Sequence record: MK250021.1 | Reading direction: 5' to 3' (one strand) | DNA: 64,000 bases | Shown: in pieces, positions 25,888-54,417 of the stretch | How the letters are laid out: each line of letters opens with the position of its first letter | Numbering within the stretch: position 1 is the first letter of the stretch | The notes under the pieces: generated by a model | The model's input: only the letters and a program-made list of their open reading frames with translations | The model's database searches: none | Told to the model about the DNA's origin: nothing | Translations under genes and position numbers: made by a program

Positions 25888-26742
25888 ATGAATAATTTTG
25901 ATGATGCAATAAAAAAGAAATTATTAGAAGATGTTAATAATTTCAATGATATAATTTATAATAGAAAGACTATTAATGAAAGTTCTATTAATAGAATGTT
26001 TTATTGGATTAATACATGTGATTGCGCATTTATTACTGCATTTAGATATGAATTAACAAATGTAGTAAATCCTGATAAAACATATTACGGACCTAATAAT
26101 GATTGGAAAGATAAAAAGATATTCACTCATGAAGAGAATCGCATGAAGAATAAATTGCTTTATGGTGAATTACTTAAATTAAAATATGGTGTTATCAAGG
26201 TAAAAGGTGTATATCCAGAAGGTATGGATAAAGAATCATCTGAAGAAAGTTATTTAGTTGTAAATAGATTTAATGATCTTGAATTTTTAAATAATATTTT
26301 AAGATTAGGAGAATTTTATAATCAAGACTCTATCTATTATAAGCCGAAGAATAAAACATATGGTTATCTTATAGGCACGAATAATGCATACCCAGGTTAT
26401 CATAAGAAAGGAGATGAAAGTACATTAAAATTAGGTACTGCTTCAAATTTTATGTCACGACTTGGAAATAAAGCATTCTCATTTATTCCAAAAAATGCTA
26501 TTAAATTTAATAATAAAGAAGATGCAGTAAATACAGAATCTGAATATCAAAAGTATTGGACAGATTATTCAGGAACGTCATTTAAAGATAGAAAAAAGAA
26601 CAGAACAATAAATCCTAAATTACAAGAAGCTTTAGAATTTTGGAGAACTAATTTAGGTGGTATTGATATTATTGAAAAAATGCATCCAAAAACAAGATTA
26701 TGTATGTTTAGTTTTTTAAGAGAAAATTTAAATAATGAATAA
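25888..26742 (+). CDS. Hypothetical large-phage protein
   Basis: Track ORF; AFITAFR...EESYLV...YNQDSI. Confidence 0.8.
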   Translation: MNNFDDAIKKKLLEDVNNFNDIIYNRKTINESSINRMFYWINTCDCAFITAFRYELTNVVNPDKTYYGPNNDWKDKKIFTHEENRMKNKLLYGELLKLKYGVIKVKGVYPEGMDKESSEESYLVVNRFNDLEFLNNILRLGEFYNQDSIYYKPKNKTYGYLIGTNNAYPGYHKKGDESTLKLGTASNFMSRLGNKAFSFIPKNAIKFNNKEDAVNTESEYQKYWTDYSGTSFKDRKKNRTINPKLQEALEFWRTNLGGIDIIEKMHPKTRLCMFSFLRENLNNE

Positions 26743-27745
26743 TAAAGATAATTAGATAATTTCAAAATATATAGAAAATAATTCTATTAAAAAGAATTGT
26801 CAATATTGGAATCATATAGATACAGATGATCAAATTTATATTAAAGATAAATTTAAACATATCAAAGATATAAAATTATCAGAATGTCTCTATATGATTC
26901 TTCATCATTTAGATAATAGGCCAATTTGTCCTATATGTCATAAAGAAATAAAACTAGAAAGATTCTCATTAGGATACAAAACATTTTGCTCTAATACATG
27001 TAAATATTCAGATAAAGGAAAACAACTTATTCATGAAAAACAAAAGGAGACATGTTTAGAAAAATATGGAGTTAATAATCCAATGAAAGATATTTCTATC
27101 AAAAATAAATCTATATCTAAATGTAAAGAAACAAATAAACGAAAATACAATGTTGAATATAATTTTCAACGTGAAGATATAAGAAAACAAATTATTCAAA
27201 CAGTAAAAAATAAAACCGGTTATGAATATGCGTTTTTAAATAAAGAAAAAGTATTATATACATTACATAATAAATATGGCTCTGGTATAGATAATGTATT
27301 TCAATTAGATAGCATTAAAGATAAATCGAATAAAACAAAAGAATTAAATAATAGTTTTAATACTTCTAAATATGAAGATTTAACATATGAAATATTAAGA
27401 GAACATTATAGTAATGTAATAAGACAATTTAAATCAGAATTATATCCATTTAATTGTGATTTTTATATTGTAGATAAAGATACATATATAGAAATAAATG
27501 CAAGTTGGACACATGGCAAACATCCATTTAATGAGGATGATTTAAATGATGTTAAACTTTATAATGAATGGATGAATAAATCAGACTATTATAAGAATTC
27601 TGCTTATAATTGGAGATTTATAGATACAAAGAAAAGGAATATTGCAAAAGAAAATAATTTAAGATATTTTGAAATATTCCCTATAAATATAGAAGATTTA
27701 AAAAATAAATTGAAAAAAATTATTCAAAAAATAGACAATTTATAA
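26735..27745 (+). CDS. Putative Vsr-like/PD-(D/E)xK homing endonuclease, 336 aa; code 15
   Basis: ATG 26735 with TAG at codon 7; CPIC, FCSNTC, CLEKYGVNNP, YPFNCDFYI..YIEINASWTHG. Confidence 0.75.
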
Positions 27746-27787: not shown

Positions 27788-28912
27788 ATGCCTAAGAAAG
27801 TTTAGTTTGAAGAATTTGAGTAGAGATTAAAAAATAAATTTGGTGATAAGTTTAAATATATTGATTTAAGTTTAATAGATAAAGAAAACTTTAATTATTT
27901 AGATAAGTATCCTATTAAATGTTTAATACATAATAAAATAGCATATAAAGAGCCGAAAATCTTTTTAAGATCTACAACATTAAATATATGTAGTAAATGT
28001 CAAAGGGAATAGCAAGTTCGTGATTCACATAAAATGCATGAAGGTAAAGAAAGACATTATACATCAGTTGATGAATTTCTAGAGCGTTTATATTAGAAAT
28101 ATAAAGATAAAATAACTATTGATAAAAATGATATTTTATTAAATAAAAATGGTTCAGTAAATTTTTCATAGAAAATGAAATTTATATGTCAAAAACATGG
28201 TGAATTTTATTGTAAACCATCCGATATATTTCGTTCAACTCATGGATGCTCAAAATGTGCTAATGAATATATGAAATTAAAAAATATTCAATATGGTGAA
28301 GAACGAAGATAGTCATTTATAAATGATGCTATTAAAATTCATGGTAATCAATATGATTATTCAAAGGTTGATATAACAGGTAAACTAAAAAAAGTTGAAA
28401 TTATATGTAAAGATCACGGTTCATTTTTTATGATGCCATCTTTACATTTAAGAGGTGAAGGTTGTAAACTTTGTAATAAAACAAATTTATTAAATTGTGA
28501 ACGACGTTTATATCAAATATTAATTGATAATTTTCCTAATGAAGAAATTATTAAATAGTATCATAACTTTTTAGGAAGACAAAGTTTAGATTTTTATTTT
28601 CCTAAATATAAAATAGGAATAGAATATCAAGGTAAGCAACATTTTGTTACTAGTGAATATTTACATAATGACACAAGGCATTCATTAAAACATTAGAAAG
28701 AACTTGATGAAAAGAAGTTCAATAAATGTAAAGAACATAATGTTACACTTTTATATTTTACATTTGATAAATAGTATGAAAATATTGAATATTACTCAAA
28801 ACTATATGTAAATATAAAAGACTTAATTGAAAAAATACAATATATAATAAATAATTACAATGTTTGCGTTAATAGTAATACAGACATTGAGCAACAAAAA
28901 TTAAATACATAA
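27788..28912 (+). CDS. Putative Vsr-like homing endonuclease with Zn-ribbon repeats, 374 aa; code 15
   Basis: CQKHGEF..GCSKC, CKDHGSF..GCKLC, SLDFYFPKYKIGIEYQGKQHF; several TAG; absent from track. Confidence 0.8.
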
Positions 28913-28918
28913 TAAATT

Positions 28919-29512
28919 ATGAGCAACAAAAAAGTAGTTGGAATTGATTTAGGTACTGGAAACAGTGCGGTAGCCATCATTGAGAATGGCGTAGCTAAAG
29001 TAATTGAAAATGCAGATGGTTATAAGACAACTCCATCTGTTGTGTACATCAAGGGTGATGAAACAAAAATTGGTGCAGCCGCAAAACGTGGTATGGTAAT
29101 GAATCCAAAGAATACCATTTCATTTGTAAAGCGTTTTATGGGTGCTAAATGGGATGATCCTGATGTACAGAAGATGTTAAAGATGGTAACATATGATGTT
29201 ATCGATGAAAATGGAAATCCTCGTCTTAAGATTGACGATAAAACATATTCACCAGAGCAAATTTCATCTATGATTCTTAAGAATATGTATGAAGTTGCAA
29301 AGGGATTCTATGGAACAGAAGATTGTAAAGACGCTGTTATTACTGTTCCTGCATGGTTTAATGATATTCAGCGTAATGCTACAAAGGTAGCAGGTCAGTT
29401 GGCTGGTTTGAATGTTCTTCGTATTATTAATGAGCCAACTGCAGCAGTTCTTTCTTCAAATATTGATACAAAATCAGGAGACAAGATTGTTCTTGTTAAT
29501 GACCTCGGTTGT
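28919..29512 (+). CDS. dnaK: DnaK (Hsp70) exon 1
   Basis: GIDLGTGNS, TTPSVV, VITVPAWF, LRIINEPTAA, ends VNDLGC. Confidence 0.95.
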
Positions 29513-29860
29513 AAACATTCTGTTACTGCATCCGCGCTTGCTGCTTAATCACTAAAGCAAGTGTAAAGTTAAAAACCCGTTAATTGCTGAGAGTCCCACG
29601 TTAGATATATACTAATGATAAAAATGGTCTTAAATACCGCTATTAGATGGTGACATACTAATTAGCACCAACTTTAATGTGTTGGGTATGGTAAAAAGTT
29701 TAAGAATTGGGTGACCGCCGTAAATCTTAAAATATATTAAGATAGAGCATCCAAGTATCTTGGTAACAAGATAAAGGTTCAACGACTAGAAAAAGTAATC
29801 CTATTAATTTAGGAAGAAATTTCCACGAATGCGGGTTAGTTTGGAAGTGGTACAAGTGAT

Positions 29861-29894
29861 ATAAGATAAATATTAAAAAGAATGTTTATCTTAT
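29861..29894 (+). promoter_or_regulatory. Hairpin covering the intron ORF start
   Basis: ataagataaatatt/aatgtttatcttat stem, TAAATA in 5' arm, ATG 29893. Confidence 0.55.
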
Positions 29895-30963
29895 GATTAA
29901 TACAGAGTTCTTTGATTTATTGATTAAACATATACTTAAATTATATGATGAAAATAATAATGAAATTAAATTTAATGAAATAACATATAAATTTGAAAAA
30001 CGAAAATTTTCATCAGTTACAAGTTTAGTTATATATGTAGATAATATATCACTAACATAGAAATAGTATCGTTCATATTTTATATTATATAAATGTAGAT
30101 GTGGTCGAGAACATAAAATATTATTACAAAAATATTTCTTAAAAAAGAAATTACATTGTATTAATTGCTGTTAGGATAGAAGTTTTGATGATTATGTAAT
30201 AGCGTATTATAAAGGTAAAATTAAAGAAAATAAACAAATAATATTAAAAGAATTTGATGAATATGATGATTAGTTTAAAGAAAATTATAAAAGAAATCAT
30301 TTATCAAATGAAGAATTTAAAAAATATTTACCTTATATTTATAAAATTAATAATCATTTAATAACAGAAGATATATTAAATAATATAGTATATTATTATA
30401 CAGAACATGTTAATAATCAATTTAAATTTACTGTTAATATTTCTTTTGATAATGGTATTACAAAAGAACCTATAAAATAGTTATATTTAAAATGTAATAC
30501 ATGTGGACGTATATTTAAAATACATACAAATAATATAAGATTACAAGATTTATCAAATATTCAATGTAGAAAATGTAAATTAGTAAATACTACATATCCT
30601 ATTAAAAAATATAAAAATACTAATATAACATATTAGTCAGGAATTGAAAAAGAATTTATTGATTTTTGCTTTTCTAATAATATTGAAATTGAAAATGGTA
30701 AAGAAATTATTTATGAATTTGATAATAAAGTAAGAACATATATAACAGATTTTTATTTACCATAGTTTAAATATATTATAGAACTTAAAGCTAAAAATAA
30801 GTTTTATAGAGATGATTTAAAATCTGGTAAAATTGAAGCAAAAAATAAGGTATGTATTGATTATTGTAATAAAAATAATTTAGAATTTAAGTTTGTGTTT
30901 GATTATGAATTAAATGAATTTAATCAATAGCTTCTAAATGAAAGAGATAGTCTTGAGGAATGA
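29893..30963 (+). CDS. Intron-encoded PD-(D/E)xK-type homing endonuclease, 356 aa; code 15
   Basis: CRCG, CNTCG, CRKC; YQSGIE...RTYITDFYLP...IELK; about 8 TAG; reads through S element to TGA. Confidence 0.8.
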
Positions 30964-31013
30964 AAGTTCCTCGGTAAGATAAAGAGCTTACAAAGTTAAA
31001 TAGAAACAAATAG

Positions 31014-32384
31014 GGTACAGAGGATGTTTCTATTGTTGAGATTTCTGATGGTATGATTGAGGTTCTTGCATCTGATGGTGATGTGTTCCTTGGCGGTCAG
31101 AATTATGATAATGCCATTGTTCAGTGGCTTATCGATGAGTTTAAGAAAGATACAGGTATTGATTTGAGTAAGGATAAGATGGCATATGCACGTCTTGTAG
31201 AGGCAGCAGAGAAAGCAAAGTGTGAGTTGTCAACTACTACTCAGACAGAGATTAACCTTCCTTATATTACTGTATCTGATGGTGTTCCTCAGATGTTGAT
31301 TAAGACTCTTAATCGCGCTACATTTGAGAGACTTACAGAAGATCTTACAAATAAGGTTGTAGAGATTGCACATCGTGCTGTAGAGAAGGCAGGTATTACA
31401 GAGGATCAGATTAGTGAGATTCTTCTTGTTGGCGGCTCTTCACGTATTCCTTCAGTTCAGGATGCATTGGAGAAGTCATTTAACAAACCTTTGAATAAGA
31501 CCTGTAATTTTGATGAGGCTGTTGCACTTGGTGCTGCTATTCAGGCAAATACACTTGCAGGTAATGCAACAGAGGATTCAGTACTTCTTTTGGATGTTAC
31601 ACCAATTTCACTTGGTATTGAGGTAAATGGTTGTGAGATGGCTAAGTTGATTGAAGCTAATACAACTATTCCTACACGTAAGTCACAGACATTTACAACT
31701 GCAGTAGATAATCAACCAGCTGTAACTATTAAGGTACTTCAGGGTGAACGTCCAATGTCCGCTGATAATAAGGTAATTGGTACATTTAATTTGGAGGGTA
31801 TTGCACCAGCTCCTAAGGGTGTTCCTCAGATTGAAGTAACATTTGATATTAATGCGGATGGTATTCTTGAAGTAACTGCAAAGGATAAGGGTACAAATAA
31901 GGAACAGAAGGTAACAATTCAGTCTCCTAACGCACTTTCTGATGAAGAGATTGCACGTATTAAGGCAGATGCTGAGAAGTTTGCAGAAGCAGATAAGAAG
32001 AAGAAAGAGGAAGTTGATAAGTTGAATACTGCAGAACAATATGCAACACAGGTTCAGAAGTATATTGATGATGAGAAAACAGGTGCATCTGTTCCATCTG
32101 ATAAGAAAGAAACATTGAAGACAAAGATTACTGCAGTTCTTGATGCAGTTTCTAAGAAGGATGTATCAGCAGCAGAGACTGCACGTGCAGATCTTGAAAC
32201 TGTATTTAAACCTATTGTTGAGGAAATGTATAAGAATGCAGGTGGTGCAACAGCAGGTCAACCTCAGAATGAATCACAGGGAAATCCATTTGCTAATGCA
32301 GGATTTGGTGATGCAAATGCTTCAACTTCTGATACTAAGGCAGATGATGACGTTCAAGAGGCAGATTTTGAGGAAGTAAAGTAA
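31014..32384 (+). CDS. dnaK: DnaK exon 2 (spliced product 654 aa)
   Basis: GTEDVS, LGGQNYD, LLVGGSSRIP, LLLDVTPISLG, GVPQIEVTFDI. Confidence 0.95.
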   Translation, partial: GTEDVSIVEISDGMIEVLASDGDVFLGGQNYDNAIVQWLIDEFKKDTGIDLSKDKMAYARLVEAAEKAKCELSTTTQTEINLPYITVSDGVPQMLIKTLNRATFERLTEDLTNKVVEIAHRAVEKAGITEDQISEILLVGGSSRIPSVQDALEKSFNKPLNKTCNFDEAVALGAAIQANTLAGNATEDSVLLLDVTPISLGIEVNGCEMAKLIEANTTIPTRKSQTFTTAVDNQPAVTIKVLQGERPMSADNKVIGTFNLEGIAPAPKGVPQIEVTFDINADGILEVTAKDKGTNKEQKVTIQSPNALSDEEIARIKADAEKFAEADKKKKEEVDKLNTAEQYATQVQKYIDDEKTGASVPSDKKETLKTKITAVLDAVSKKDVSAAETARADLETVFKPIVEEMYKNAGGATAGQPQNESQGNPFANAGFGDANASTSDTKADDDVQEADFEEVK

Positions 32385-32568
32385 TAAAAATATAAGGTCT
32401 TGAAATATAGACCTTATTCTAAATAAGTTATATATATTATAACAATATACAATTTAGAAATAATGAAAACTATTAAAGGTGAGTAAAAGTATGTAAAGAA
32501 GGGACGTTATCATGAGAATTGTATAACGTCCCTTTTTATGTTTAAACATTAATTTATTTGATTTAAAT

Positions 32569-33657
32569 ATGACAAAAGACTTGTATGATATATTAGGTAT
32601 TGAGAAAGGTTGTAATGATCAGAAAAAGATTAAAACTGCATTTAGACAACTTTCTAAGAAATACCATCCAGATATGCAGAGAGGAAAATCAGATGCAGAG
32701 GTAAAGGAAGCTGAGGAAAAGTTTAAGGATGTTAACCATGCATATGAAGTTTTGAGTGATCCTCAAAAGAAAGAGAATTATGATAATTTTGGTGATGAAA
32801 ATGGAAGACCAAATCCATTTGGTGGTTCCGGTGGTTTTAATCCATTTGGTGGTGATTTTGATCCATTTGGAGGATTTAATCCATTTGGAGGATTTGGTGG
32901 AAGTTCACGTCAGAAGAAAAATCAGGTTCAACCAGGTAGGGATATTCAGATGAAGATTCCTGTATCTATTGAAGATATATTTAAGGGAGTTAAGAAGAGT
33001 GTTAAATTTAAGAGAAACGTAAGGTGTTCTGTATGTCATGGTGCAGGTGGAACTGGTCAGAAGACATGTCCAAAGTGTCATGGAACTGGTAGAATTATTC
33101 ATCAGCAGCAATTTGCAATGGGGTCATTCTCTATTCATGAAGAAGTTTGTCCATTGTGTCATGGAACTGGTTTTTATGTAGAGAACAAATGTGATAAGTG
33201 TGGTGGTTCTGGATTTGATAAGAAAGAAGTAAAACTTGATATTGAATTACCATCTGGAGTACAGAATGGAGAATATCGTGTATATAGTGGTGAAGGATCC
33301 GAATCAAAGAATATTTCAGGACCTAATGGTAATTTTATCGCTATTGCAGATTATACGTTTGATACAGATAGGTATCAGGTTGATGGGTTGAATGTAGTTG
33401 AACATATTCATGTCCCTTATTATAAATTGTTGCTTGGCTGTTCATATACTCTTAATATTCCTTCTGGTGTAAGTAAGGTTGTTAAGTTGAAGAGTTGTAT
33501 TAAGGAAGGAACAATTATGAGATTAACCGGCGAAGGACTTAAGAGGTCTGATGGCCAAAAGGGTGATTACTTCATTTGTGTTCATTATCAATTTCCAGAA
33601 GACCTTAGTGCGAATGATAGAGCATTGCTTGAAGTTATAGAGAAAAACAATAAATAA
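32569..33657 (+). CDS. dnaJ: DnaJ
   Basis: J domain with HPD, G/F region, four CxxCxGxG repeats. Confidence 0.95.
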   Translation: MTKDLYDILGIEKGCNDQKKIKTAFRQLSKKYHPDMQRGKSDAEVKEAEEKFKDVNHAYEVLSDPQKKENYDNFGDENGRPNPFGGSGGFNPFGGDFDPFGGFNPFGGFGGSSRQKKNQVQPGRDIQMKIPVSIEDIFKGVKKSVKFKRNVRCSVCHGAGGTGQKTCPKCHGTGRIIHQQQFAMGSFSIHEEVCPLCHGTGFYVENKCDKCGGSGFDKKEVKLDIELPSGVQNGEYRVYSGEGSESKNISGPNGNFIAIADYTFDTDRYQVDGLNVVEHIHVPYYKLLLGCSYTLNIPSGVSKVVKLKSCIKEGTIMRLTGEGLKRSDGQKGDYFICVHYQFPEDLSANDRALLEVIEKNNK

Positions 33658-43546: not shown

Positions 43547-43618
43547 TGGGGATTAGTATAGTGGTCAGTACAGAGGTCTCTAAAACCTTTAGGCCGAGTT
43601 CGAGTCTCGGATCCCCAA
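43547..43618 (+). tRNA. Amber suppressor tRNA (anticodon CTA), Gln-type
   Basis: TGGGGAT/ATCCCCA acceptor, loop ctCTAaa (43580-82), T arm ccgag-ttcgagt-ctcgg. Confidence 0.95.
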
Positions 43619-43660
43619 CAATTAAATGACATAAGTAATATTTTAAAGATTTGATGAATT

Positions 43661-45474: not shown

Positions 45475-45881
45475 GGGGATGAATTTGGATTTGCTTATTA
45501 ATTATGTGGTAATAAATCGTGTAGGAAAGTTAATAGCCTTTTGTAGTAATACAAAGAAACTTAGCAAATAAATTTAAATGACGACGAAATAGAATTTCGT
45601 ATGGCAGCTTAATCCTGATAGGATTGGTAATATACACCCATTGAAGCATTTGCTCCTTATACGGTAAGTTTGAGCATTGCCACGGAGTTCGTAAGAGTGA
45701 TAATCTCTGTTAAATAAAACTCTTACATATACTTATTCATTGTCCAATAAGAGTGATTATGACATTAAACTGTTTAACTCTAATAACACAGATATAAATG
45801 AAAACTAATAAAGACATACGCACGTAGATAGTTTATTATTGACATGTTAGTAATACGTGGTTTCGAGTACCACCATCTCCA
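45475..45881 (+). ncRNA. ssrA: tmRNA
   Basis: GGGGATG/CATCTCC acceptor with G3.U70, GGATTTG, T arm gtggt-ttcgagt-accac, tag ORF 45580-45612 DDEIEFRMAA-TAA. Confidence 0.92.
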
Positions 45882-46020
45882 CATTTTTAGATTATATTTC
45901 ATAATATAGAATTTTTAATTGTTTAATTTTGTAAATGAGTTGTATGTTTAGATAAACATATGACTCATTTTTTTGTATAATAATAAATAAGATAATAAAA
46001 CTAAATATAAGCATAAATAT

Positions 46021-54302: not shown

Positions 54303-54417
54303 GCTAGTATAGTTTAGTGGCAAAACACCCAAATCCCAGGGATAAGAGATGGTTTGAGTTGTAGTGTACAATACAATATACAGAAGATTTTAGTGAGTTC
54401 GATTCTCACTGCTAGCT
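54303..54417 (+). ncRNA. tRNA-like RNA with expanded anticodon/variable region
   Basis: Acceptor gctagta/tgctagc, D arm and T arm intact; ~65 nt between D and T arms. Confidence 0.7.

Follow-up and report, generated by a model that had tools for sequence, protein, structure and literature searches.

Group I introns that carry an open reading frame (ORF) in a peripheral loop of the ribozyme are well known from bacteriophages, among them the intron of T4 td, which encodes I-TevI, that of the DNA polymerase gene of Bacillus phage SPO1, which encodes I-HmuI, and those of Staphylococcus phage Twort. The present analysis concerns an insert of 1501 nt (29513..31013, plus strand) in the dnaK gene of a Prevotella phage of the Lak-B group, within a stretch of 64,000 nucleotides from sequence record MK250021.1 which is referred to here as the window. 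This insert is very probably a mobile group I intron with a gene for a PD-(D/E)xK endonuclease in its loop L8, which would be spliced, would home and would be timed to late infection in the manner set out below.

A related arrangement has been described by Borges et al. in the Agate phages, where an intron endonuclease with recoded stop codons resides in an early gene written in the standard code, and where a delay of its expression to late infection was proposed (bioRxiv 10.1101/2021.08.26.457843). Lak phages are megaphages of ~540-550 kb which use genetic code 15 (PMC6784885). In their original description introns were discussed for tRNAs and not for protein genes, and DnaK went unmentioned (PMC6784885). 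Literature searches likewise turned up neither the Lak dnaK intron nor any other group I intron in an Hsp70 or dnaK gene.

Limits of the insert and selection on the split dnaK gene

The dnaK region (28919-32384) is 100% identical to six complete Prevotella phage Lak-B genomes (MK250020, -21, -22, -24, -25, -28). Lak-C1 is 90.7% identical to the region and holds the full element, intron together with ORF, at ~91% identity. The preliminary description, made from the window alone, had suggested a search for intron-less dnaK in related phages, and such alleles exist in Lak-A1 and Lak-A2, where dnaK has no insert and the two matching pieces lie within only 1955 bp. The junction in Lak-A, ...GACCTTGGTTGT|GGTACAGAAGAT..., which reads ...GGTTGT|GGTACAGA... 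in Lak-A1, is exactly the predicted exon joint. Because the intron-less allele is joined at 29512|31014, the insert comprises exactly 29513-31013, with zero positional ambiguity. The base that precedes the insert, at the 5' splice site, is U29512 and its last base is a G, so that the omega-G which had been assigned to 31013 is fixed in position by the Lak-A allele.

Shorter forms of the intron also occur. Lak-B4, Lak-B7 and Lak-B8 have a 584-nt version in which the ribozyme is kept and the interior of the ORF is deleted, and in one public sequencing run (X1) a contig form in which 27 nt replace 29847-30931 stands beside an ORF-bearing form. The Lak-like contigs of this run are ~90% identical to the window, and the ORF-less form with the 27-nt L8 has ~5x the depth of the ORF-bearing one. 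The run is labelled a marine metatranscriptome, though it is probably DNA, and the habitat label is an odd one for a gut phage.

The flanks of the insert are two colinear halves of an Hsp70 protein, as expected from the earlier proposal that dnaK breaks at its phosphate-2 motif. Exon 1 (28919..29512, plus strand) encodes 198 amino acids ending in ...VNDLGC and matches Pfam HSP70 over profile positions 1-194 (E 2e-69); exon 2 (31014..32384, plus strand) encodes 456 amino acids beginning with GTEDVS and matches positions 196-599 (E 4e-135). When aligned with Hsp70 structures in the PDB, the halves abut at the DLGGGT phosphate-2 loop with a single residue, C198, between them. Translation of the joined exons gives, in frame, the DnaK of 654 residues that had been foreseen, with the junction reading DLGC|GTEDVS. 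By structure and sequence comparison the Lak protein is nearest to DnaK and mortalin, and is a DnaK of the bacterial type.

The exons remain under strong purifying selection. Between Lak-B and Lak-C1, both of which bear the intron, synonymous divergence (dS) is 0.36 in exon 1 and 0.42 in exon 2, with ratios of nonsynonymous to synonymous divergence (dN/dS) of 0.10 and 0.13 respectively. Such ratios, at dS ~0.4 between two intron-bearing lineages, indicate that the split dnaK is still in use; they are not what would be expected of a gene left broken in its ATP-binding loop. The ribozyme segments are conserved still further, with 94% (5') and 100% (3') identity between Lak-B and Lak-C1 as against 88% for the exons.

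The differences between an intron-less and an intron-bearing allele have a distribution of their own. Lak-A1 and Lak-C1 have nearly identical exons. All four differences in exon 1 lie within 40 nt of the junction. The first 700 nt of exon 2 hold ten, of which two are at +15 and +18. Lak-C1 carries the Lak-B base at -7, +15 and +18, positions where the change is synonymous and where the exon pairs with the intron (in P1, P10 and a 3' hairpin). Co-conversion during homing would explain the pattern, as would selection for pairing between exon and intron, and either of these implies a working element.

That the insert belongs to some other class of element, namely an intein, a group II intron or a piece of DNA excised from the genome, is a notion that has nothing in its favour but the interruption of a gene, and its probability is negligible. 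The dnaK frame continues for 12 codons into the insert and then meets a TAA stop at 29546-48, so that the insert is not an intein. A reverse-transcriptase ORF and an Rfam group II match are both absent from it. Instead, it runs from A to G after a U, its P1 and P10 pairings join it to the exons, and it has the R and S core elements of group I introns.

Ribozyme structure and covariance models

The preliminary description had named P1, P2, P3, P7, P9 and P10, without coordinates for P2, P3, P7 and P9; these latter helices were located here by homology and covariation among introns found at the same codon of other viral Hsp70 genes (see below). All of the features that follow are on the plus strand. 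P1 pairs the exon sequence CGGUUGU (29506-12) with the internal guide sequence GCAUCCG (29528-34), as proposed; in the computed duplex six of seven positions are paired, with one U x U mismatch, and U29512.G29528 forms the U.G pair at the splice site. The P10 that had been put forward for 29513-27 was also recovered as a computed duplex, between this part of the L1 loop and 31014-29 of exon 2, where it aligns the 3' exon. An alternative 3' hairpin across the 3' splice site is computed between the intron tail (31000-08) and the exon (31025-33). P2 (29535-42/29556-63) was read from the sequence; it is present in the minimum free energy fold and the same helix is found in the intron of contig L170.

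The core is formed by two helical regions. P3 pairs 29574-80 with 29831-37 and is helix 1 of a covariance model, R1, in which six of six pairs show compensatory change. P4 (29585-88/29746-49, 4 bp) and P5 (29595-98/29708-11) follow from the R1 alignment, in which both covary, P4 enclosing P5. The extension of P5 consists of a hairpin (29599-618) and a stem (29628-35/29697-705), placed by the R1 alignment and by comparison with L170, and an extra hairpin (29724-43) precedes the 3' strand of P4. P6 (29751-52/29776-77) and P6a (29756-62/29767-73), which is capped by a GUAA loop, correspond to R1 helices 9 and 10, of which helix 10 is compensatory in seven of seven pairs. P7, as read from the sequence, is formed by 29780-88 and 30948-55, with C29783 bulged beside the G29784-C30952 pair, the position of the guanosine site; the P7 pair is invariant, so covariation is uninformative for this helix. 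Its 5' strand lies in an exact copy of the R element, GGUUCAACGACUAGA (29776-90), and part of its 3' strand region in the S element, GAGAUAGUC (30944-52). The 42 nt between P7 and the 3' strand of P3 (29789-830) hold the putative P7.1 and P7.2, where two helices of the family (R1 helices 11 and 12) covary; they are followed by a conserved CCACGA and then by the P3 3' strand, and in this segment (29789-29837) the block GAAGAAAUUUCCACGA is conserved across the whole intron family. This layout may be like that of subgroup IA. P8 (29839-47/30931-39; duplex -10 kcal/mol) has the ORF in its loop, L8. P9 (30956-71, with a GAAA loop) and P9.1 (30974-91) complete the structure, the latter beside the P7 3' strand and P9 in the segment 30948-30991.

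An earlier, hand-drawn fold placed P4 at 29707-13/29748-54 and P8 at 29808-16 and left an unexplained insert of 125 nt between P3 and P4. It was dropped because in contigs L104, L170 and L119 the sequence AAUUGCUG, which follows P3 directly, forms the 5' strand of P4, so that the 125 nt are the extension of P5.

Comparison of alleles and of family members supports the helices individually. In Lak-C1 an A-U pair of P3 has become C-G (29575/29836), and in P8 a G-to-A change in Lak-B4 and Lak-C1 preserves the pair. Between Lak and L170 both strands have changed in P3 (CCC/GGG versus UUG/CAA) and in P4 (UGCU/AGCA versus UGCG/CGCA), and the stem of the P5 extension is UCUUAAA/UUUAAGA in the one and CUAUUAG/CUAAUAG in the other. 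P8 pairs in every member of the family despite unrelated sequences. The guide covaries with the exon (GGAGGU/GCUUCC and GGUGGU/GCUACC in relatives, GGUUGU/GCAUCC in Lak), such that Lak, with its Cys codon UGU in place of GGU, has an A at the matching guide position, which is U or C in the other members. P10 and the alternative 3' hairpin also track the exon codons from member to member.

R1 describes the core from P3 to P3' in 204 positions and 46 pairs. It was built from 14 members other than Lak, and L170 and L119 were also left out of its training. On the 64-kb window it gives one match, at 29570-29839 on the plus strand, over the full length of the model (73.9 bits, E 2.8e-16), and on the intron-less Lak-A1 locus it gives zero matches. 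The nearest record, an 87-kb fragment, has the same single R1 match and lacks a match to RF00028, the Rfam model of group I introns. Over 46 distinct members 95.6% of the cells at R1 pairs are canonical, compared with 72.5% when partners are shuffled and 32-42% when partners are slid by 1-3 columns, and compensatory double changes occur in 34 of the 46 pairs. The Lak insert is in this way homologous to introns which RF00028 itself recognises, including those of L104 (116 bits) and L040 (90 bits).

Several results weigh against the conclusion that the insert is a functional mobile group I intron. RF00028 gives zero matches on the window, both at its gathering score (50 bits) and at E up to 10, and a poor score from this model was the outcome that the preliminary description had named as refuting an intron. 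On the ORF-less copy of Lak-B4 only the P8-P7-P9 part is reached, at 17 bits (E 0.08). A separate covariance model for the 3' part, R2, in which the automatically derived first hairpin is probably spurious, is weak on Lak (17.7 bits, E 0.29), yet the match falls at the expected 30939-31003, and the same model gives 67 bits on L170 and 51 on L119. The P4 of Lak has only 4 bp, and an alternative local pairing, 29707-13 with 29748-54, is available in Lak-B1. The percentage of paired cells is inflated, the alignment from which it was counted having been fitted to the model structure; the compensatory counts and the slid controls are stronger evidence than that percentage. Among public runs recorded as RNA none contains the dnaK locus, and hence none provides RNA with a spliced junction. 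One further public run, X3, does contain the exact 29512|31014 joint beside contigs that cross both splice sites unspliced; this joint could be either DNA of an intron-less strain or spliced RNA, and was not counted as evidence of splicing. As to RF00028, it misses the Lak copy because of the 1.1-kb ORF in L8 and the ~120-nt extension of P5, and not because the core is missing. The failure reflects the difficulty that the model has with long insertions, and reaching its score is not what defines such an RNA.

These points bear directly on the suggestion that the insert is dead or purely selfish and is never removed, leaving the dnaK of Lak-B and Lak-C a pseudogene or a source of two separate polypeptides. 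The silence of RF00028 and of the RNA runs would fit such a state of affairs, as would the 12-codon continuation of exon 1 to a TAA and an ATG at 31053 that opens an ORF of 443 amino acids. It is nonetheless very improbable. A break in the phosphate-2 loop would part the two ATPase lobes of Hsp70, whereas the exons of both intron-bearing lineages are selected as those of a working gene; the ribozyme parts are better conserved than the exons; the pairing in P1 and P10 is matched to the exon bases of Lak itself; and the core matches a covarying group I family. The intron-less allele, the R1 match, the relatives that score with RF00028, the covarying helices and the selection on the exons together uphold the original assignment to group I.

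Splicing of the Lak intron would then follow the usual course. The transcript is predicted to fold into the P3-P8 and P4-P6 core, in which P1 would present U29512 in its U.G pair with the guide (29528-34). An external guanosine would cleave after U29512, P10 (29513-27 with 31014-29) would position the 3' exon, and the exons would be ligated after omega-G 31013. The predicted product is the 654-residue DnaK, with ...DLGC-GTEDVS... across the phosphate-2 ATP-binding loop. Both the catalysis and the order of these steps are what we infer from the structure.

The endonuclease gene and its recoding

The preliminary description had noted an endonuclease within the intron. Its gene was found in L8 (29893..30963, plus strand) and comprises 356 codons which can be read only with TAG as a sense codon, here Gln, up to a TGA stop at 30961-63. 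Under translation table 11 the interval 29893-30932 has eight in-frame TAGs, other stops being absent. The 3' end of the ORF overlaps P8', P7' and L9, and its start codon is inside a 10-bp hairpin (29861-70/29885-94) which may add translational control. In 12 aligned members of the family the L8 ORFs encode ~350-380 amino acids, are 24-30% identical and are uninterrupted under the standard code. One of the Lak TAGs, TAG248, occupies the column of an invariant Gln, which is part of a Y-Q-S motif, and other TAGs fall in columns which have Gln, Asp, Glu or Lys in homologs. The eight Cys of two zinc ribbons, one N-terminal and one central, are invariant in the alignment, as are D286, E297 and K299 in 13 sequences.

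The AlphaFold model of the protein has a mean pLDDT (predicted local distance difference test) of 77.6, rising to ~93 over residues 240-356. Structure alignment of the C-terminal domain (residues 230-356) gives TnsA (Z 8.4), NGO0050 (7.8), I-Bth0305I (7.7) and Vsr (6.8), where a Z near 8 is not far above background for the aligner used. A match to PHROG 15137, 'endonuclease', was obtained at E 5e-7, and one to a TnsA-like Pfam family at E 0.0015, below the family cut-off. With the whole endonuclease, Pfam gives zero matches above its cut-offs and a Foldseek search of the model zero matches at E up to 0.001. As modelled, the C-terminal domain is a PD-(D/E)xK nuclease with a D...E-x-K motif on a fold of the restriction-endonuclease-like type.

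It might be argued that the ribozyme is functional whilst the endonuclease is decaying, so that the intron is immobile in Lak and merely inherited. The eight in-frame TAGs could be taken for decay, as could the loss of the ORF interior in Lak-B4, Lak-B7 and Lak-B8 and the greater depth of the ORF-less L8 form in run X1. In addition, Ala and Asn replace in Lak a nearly invariant Asp and His beside the E-x-K motif, a further point that counts against mobility, and one which makes the activity of the Lak endonuclease uncertain. The pattern of change in the gene is nevertheless that of a maintained protein. TAG is the sole stop within the 356 codons in both Lak-B and Lak-C1, between which there are zero frameshifts and dN/dS is 0.19. 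TAG interchanges with CAA, GAA, TAT, GTT and AAA between the two (codon 79 is CAA in Lak-B and TAG in Lak-C1), stands at position 248 on an invariant Gln, and is a sense codon across the whole window. Recent homing, moreover, would be expected to leave differences between intron-less and intron-bearing alleles near the junction, and that is where they are concentrated. A decaying endonuclease is on balance unlikely, though a good deal less so than an insert that is never removed. If the mobile intron proposed here is accepted, its endonuclease is presumed to cleave dnaK where the intron is absent, as in Lak-A, and repair would copy the intron in.

The phage recodes TAG to Gln (code 15). Among the ORFs of at least 150 codons in the window TAG is never the terminator, and many of them have it in frame 5-30 times; a suppressor tRNA with anticodon CUA is encoded at 43547..43619 on the plus strand (called by ARAGORN; Rfam tRNA 61.7 bits). 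Both exons of dnaK, by contrast, have zero TAG codons, as do dnaJ and a block at 19.6-26.7 kb. Lacking TAG, dnaK is translatable under the standard code of the host; the endonuclease, with its eight TAGs, needs the suppressor. It would be made only when tRNA(CUA) is there to insert Gln at TAG, which is presumably late in infection. This recalls the Agate phages, which like Lak have an intron endonuclease with in-frame recoded stops inside a gene of standard code. The recoded stop there is TGA (Trp), the phages are of ~127 kb and the host gene is unnamed in the text, whereas Lak recodes TAG (Gln) and is a megaphage of ~550 kb (bioRxiv 10.1101/2021.08.26.457843). L170, a 134-kb contig with TGA in its ORF, may be of the Agate type. 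Its endonuclease homolog (L170:5487-6640, plus strand) has TGA in frame twice, in one case at a Trp/Phe column, and a further homolog (L119:4093-5210, plus strand) has eight in-frame TAGs, the adjoining ORFs having 5 and 10 and the DnaK exon none. The same selfish gene seems to have adapted to different recoded stops in different phages.

The surroundings of dnaK hold other genes of this kind. Directly upstream are a free-standing homing-endonuclease-like gene (26735-27745, plus strand; 336 amino acids, one TAG) which matches Pfam DUF7487 and a PHROG 'homing endonuclease', and a second gene (27788-28912, plus strand; 374 amino acids) which is open only with nine TAGs as sense and has a nuclease-like motif, ...DFYFPKYKIGIEYQGKQH.... 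Counting the intron ORF, three genes that bear TAG and look selfish stand around the dnaK-dnaJ pair, which is free of TAG. Base composition differs likewise: dnaK and dnaJ (28919-33657) have ~38% G+C and encode Gln mostly as CAG, whereas the adjoining genes and the intron ORF have 13-25% G+C and use CAA or TAG for Gln, which suggests either a relatively recent acquisition of dnaK-dnaJ or different constraints upon it. Two other RNA features were observed in the window. An Rfam tmRNA match at 45475-45884 (plus strand) is at threshold, with 47.3 bits against a gathering score of 47, and ARAGORN reports none. A 115-nt Rfam tRNA match at 54303-54417 (plus strand; 37.5 bits), also uncalled by ARAGORN, is probably an intron-containing tRNA as described for baboon Lak phages (PMC6784885).

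Introns at one Hsp70 codon and comparison with known systems

A scan of IMG/VR with the 15-mer of the R element found more than 113 viral loci. RF00028 gave 29 matches above threshold on 12 of these, in 8 of the 12, and at several of the loci an Hsp70 gene proved to be split where the Lak dnaK is. A second scan with a pattern of R plus P7.1, followed by tblastn with the Lak exons, yielded ~45 viral contigs whose Hsp70 gene has an intron in that same position, following the Gly codon. In every one the last bases of exon 1 are ...GGNGGU, with a U before the intron, whose own last base is G, and exon 2 opens with GGNAC. About a dozen of the introns are ORF-less, with 329-450 nt. Many of the contigs are named as giant-virus metagenome-assembled genomes (MAGs; GVMAG), their origin being taken from the IMG/VR names and the type of Hsp70 alone: the giant-virus hosts of the intron are Hsp70 genes of the eukaryotic cytosolic type, as opposed to the bacterial-type DnaK of Lak. 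Others are large and phage-like, such as L170 (134 kb) and L119 (263 kb), whose DnaK is 50-58% identical to that of Lak. A protein search added 55 clusters of full-length endonuclease homologs (identity 41-90%), and the contigs that hold them reach 410 kb. In the two clusters that were looked up the endonuclease lies between two HSP70 fragments with dnaJ downstream, from which the arrangement of dnaK, intron and endonuclease appears common in huge phages.

The earlier remark that a chaperone host is unusual for a phage intron therefore holds in one sense only. Such a host is undescribed in the literature searched, but the intron with its endonuclease is common at this one codon in huge phages and in giant-virus MAGs. 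An intron and endonuclease family aimed at a single Hsp70 codon and common to these two groups is apparently undescribed. It can further be envisaged that one lineage of intron and PD-(D/E)xK endonuclease has specialised on the phosphate-2 codon of Hsp70/DnaK and has moved between viruses of eukaryotes, namely the giant-virus MAGs whose Hsp70 is of eukaryotic type, and huge phages of bacteria whose DnaK is of bacterial type (Lak, L119, L170 and contigs of 275-410 kb), the endonuclease being re-written with TAG or TGA sense codons in recoded phages so that homing is confined to late infection. The balance of probability for this broader scheme is about even.

Further variants were encountered at or near this site. 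A giant-virus-type Hsp70 (L012:6700-7600, minus strand) has no intron at the phosphate-2 site. Close to its phosphate-1 motif, immediately before the residue that corresponds to Lak position 13 in the alignment, is a different insert which bears an R element and looks like a second Hsp70 target site. On a 548-kb contig (L166:2368-3650, plus strand) an intron of the same family at the same Hsp70 site has an insertion of ~900 nt, with an unrelated ORF of 262 amino acids, near its 5' end in the P1/P2 region and not in L8. A public protein set holds many 'Hsp70' proteins of 430-460 amino acids which are 72-95% identical to exon 2 of the L026 gene and are fragments of exon 2 only. It would seem that mis-annotation of Hsp70 genes split by introns is widespread in metagenomic protein catalogues.

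For annotation, Lak-B and Lak-C encode one full-length DnaK, not two fragments with hypothetical ORFs, and a full-length Hsp70 is likewise to be expected in many MAGs of huge phages and giant viruses. RF00028 alone under-detects ORF-bearing introns of the kind found at this Hsp70 site. The presence of intron-less, intron-only and intron-plus-endonuclease alleles in close relatives provides a compact natural system for studies of homing in uncultured megaphages, and a TAG-rich selfish gene within an early gene in standard code is a clean second example in which recoding would time expression. The occurrence of the family in giant viruses and phages alike points to an exchange of mobile introns across virus realms by way of a universally conserved target sequence.

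Compared with the other Hsp70-site introns (L104, L040, L026, L170 and L119), that of Lak has the same insertion codon, sequence blocks and helices and a homologous endonuclease in L8. It differs in its longer P5 extension, in the extra hairpin before the P4 3' strand and in a weaker P4, and the exon codon is Cys (UGU), with the compensating change in the guide, where the others have Gly. Its ORF is TAG-recoded like that of L119, whereas the L170 ORF has TGA codons and the giant-virus copies use the standard code. As regards the nuclease, the restriction-endonuclease-like catalytic fold of the Lak domain is common to I-Bth0305I (PDB 3r3p), an intron-encoded homing endonuclease, and to TnsA (1f1z). 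Sequence identity to these is only 14-16%, however, and Lak adds two zinc ribbons; it also has D...E-x-K in place of the motif of I-Bth0305I.

Set beside the introns of T4 td, SPO1 and Twort, the Lak element appears, on the strength of sequence comparison, to belong to the same class and to work in the manner of these classic ORF-bearing phage introns. It has in common with them the U.G pair at the 5' splice site, the omega-G, a P3-P9 core, probably with P7.1/P7.2, and a phage host. A free-standing loop ORF that overlaps the 3' part of the core and has its start codon in a hairpin is also a shared feature. Against this, the Lak ORF needs suppression of stop codons, and the Lak intron, unlike theirs, does not score with RF00028. 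The endonuclease of Lak is of the PD-(D/E)xK class where those of T4 td, SPO1 and Twort are GIY-YIG or HNH enzymes, and its host is a chaperone gene where theirs are genes of DNA metabolism or structural genes.

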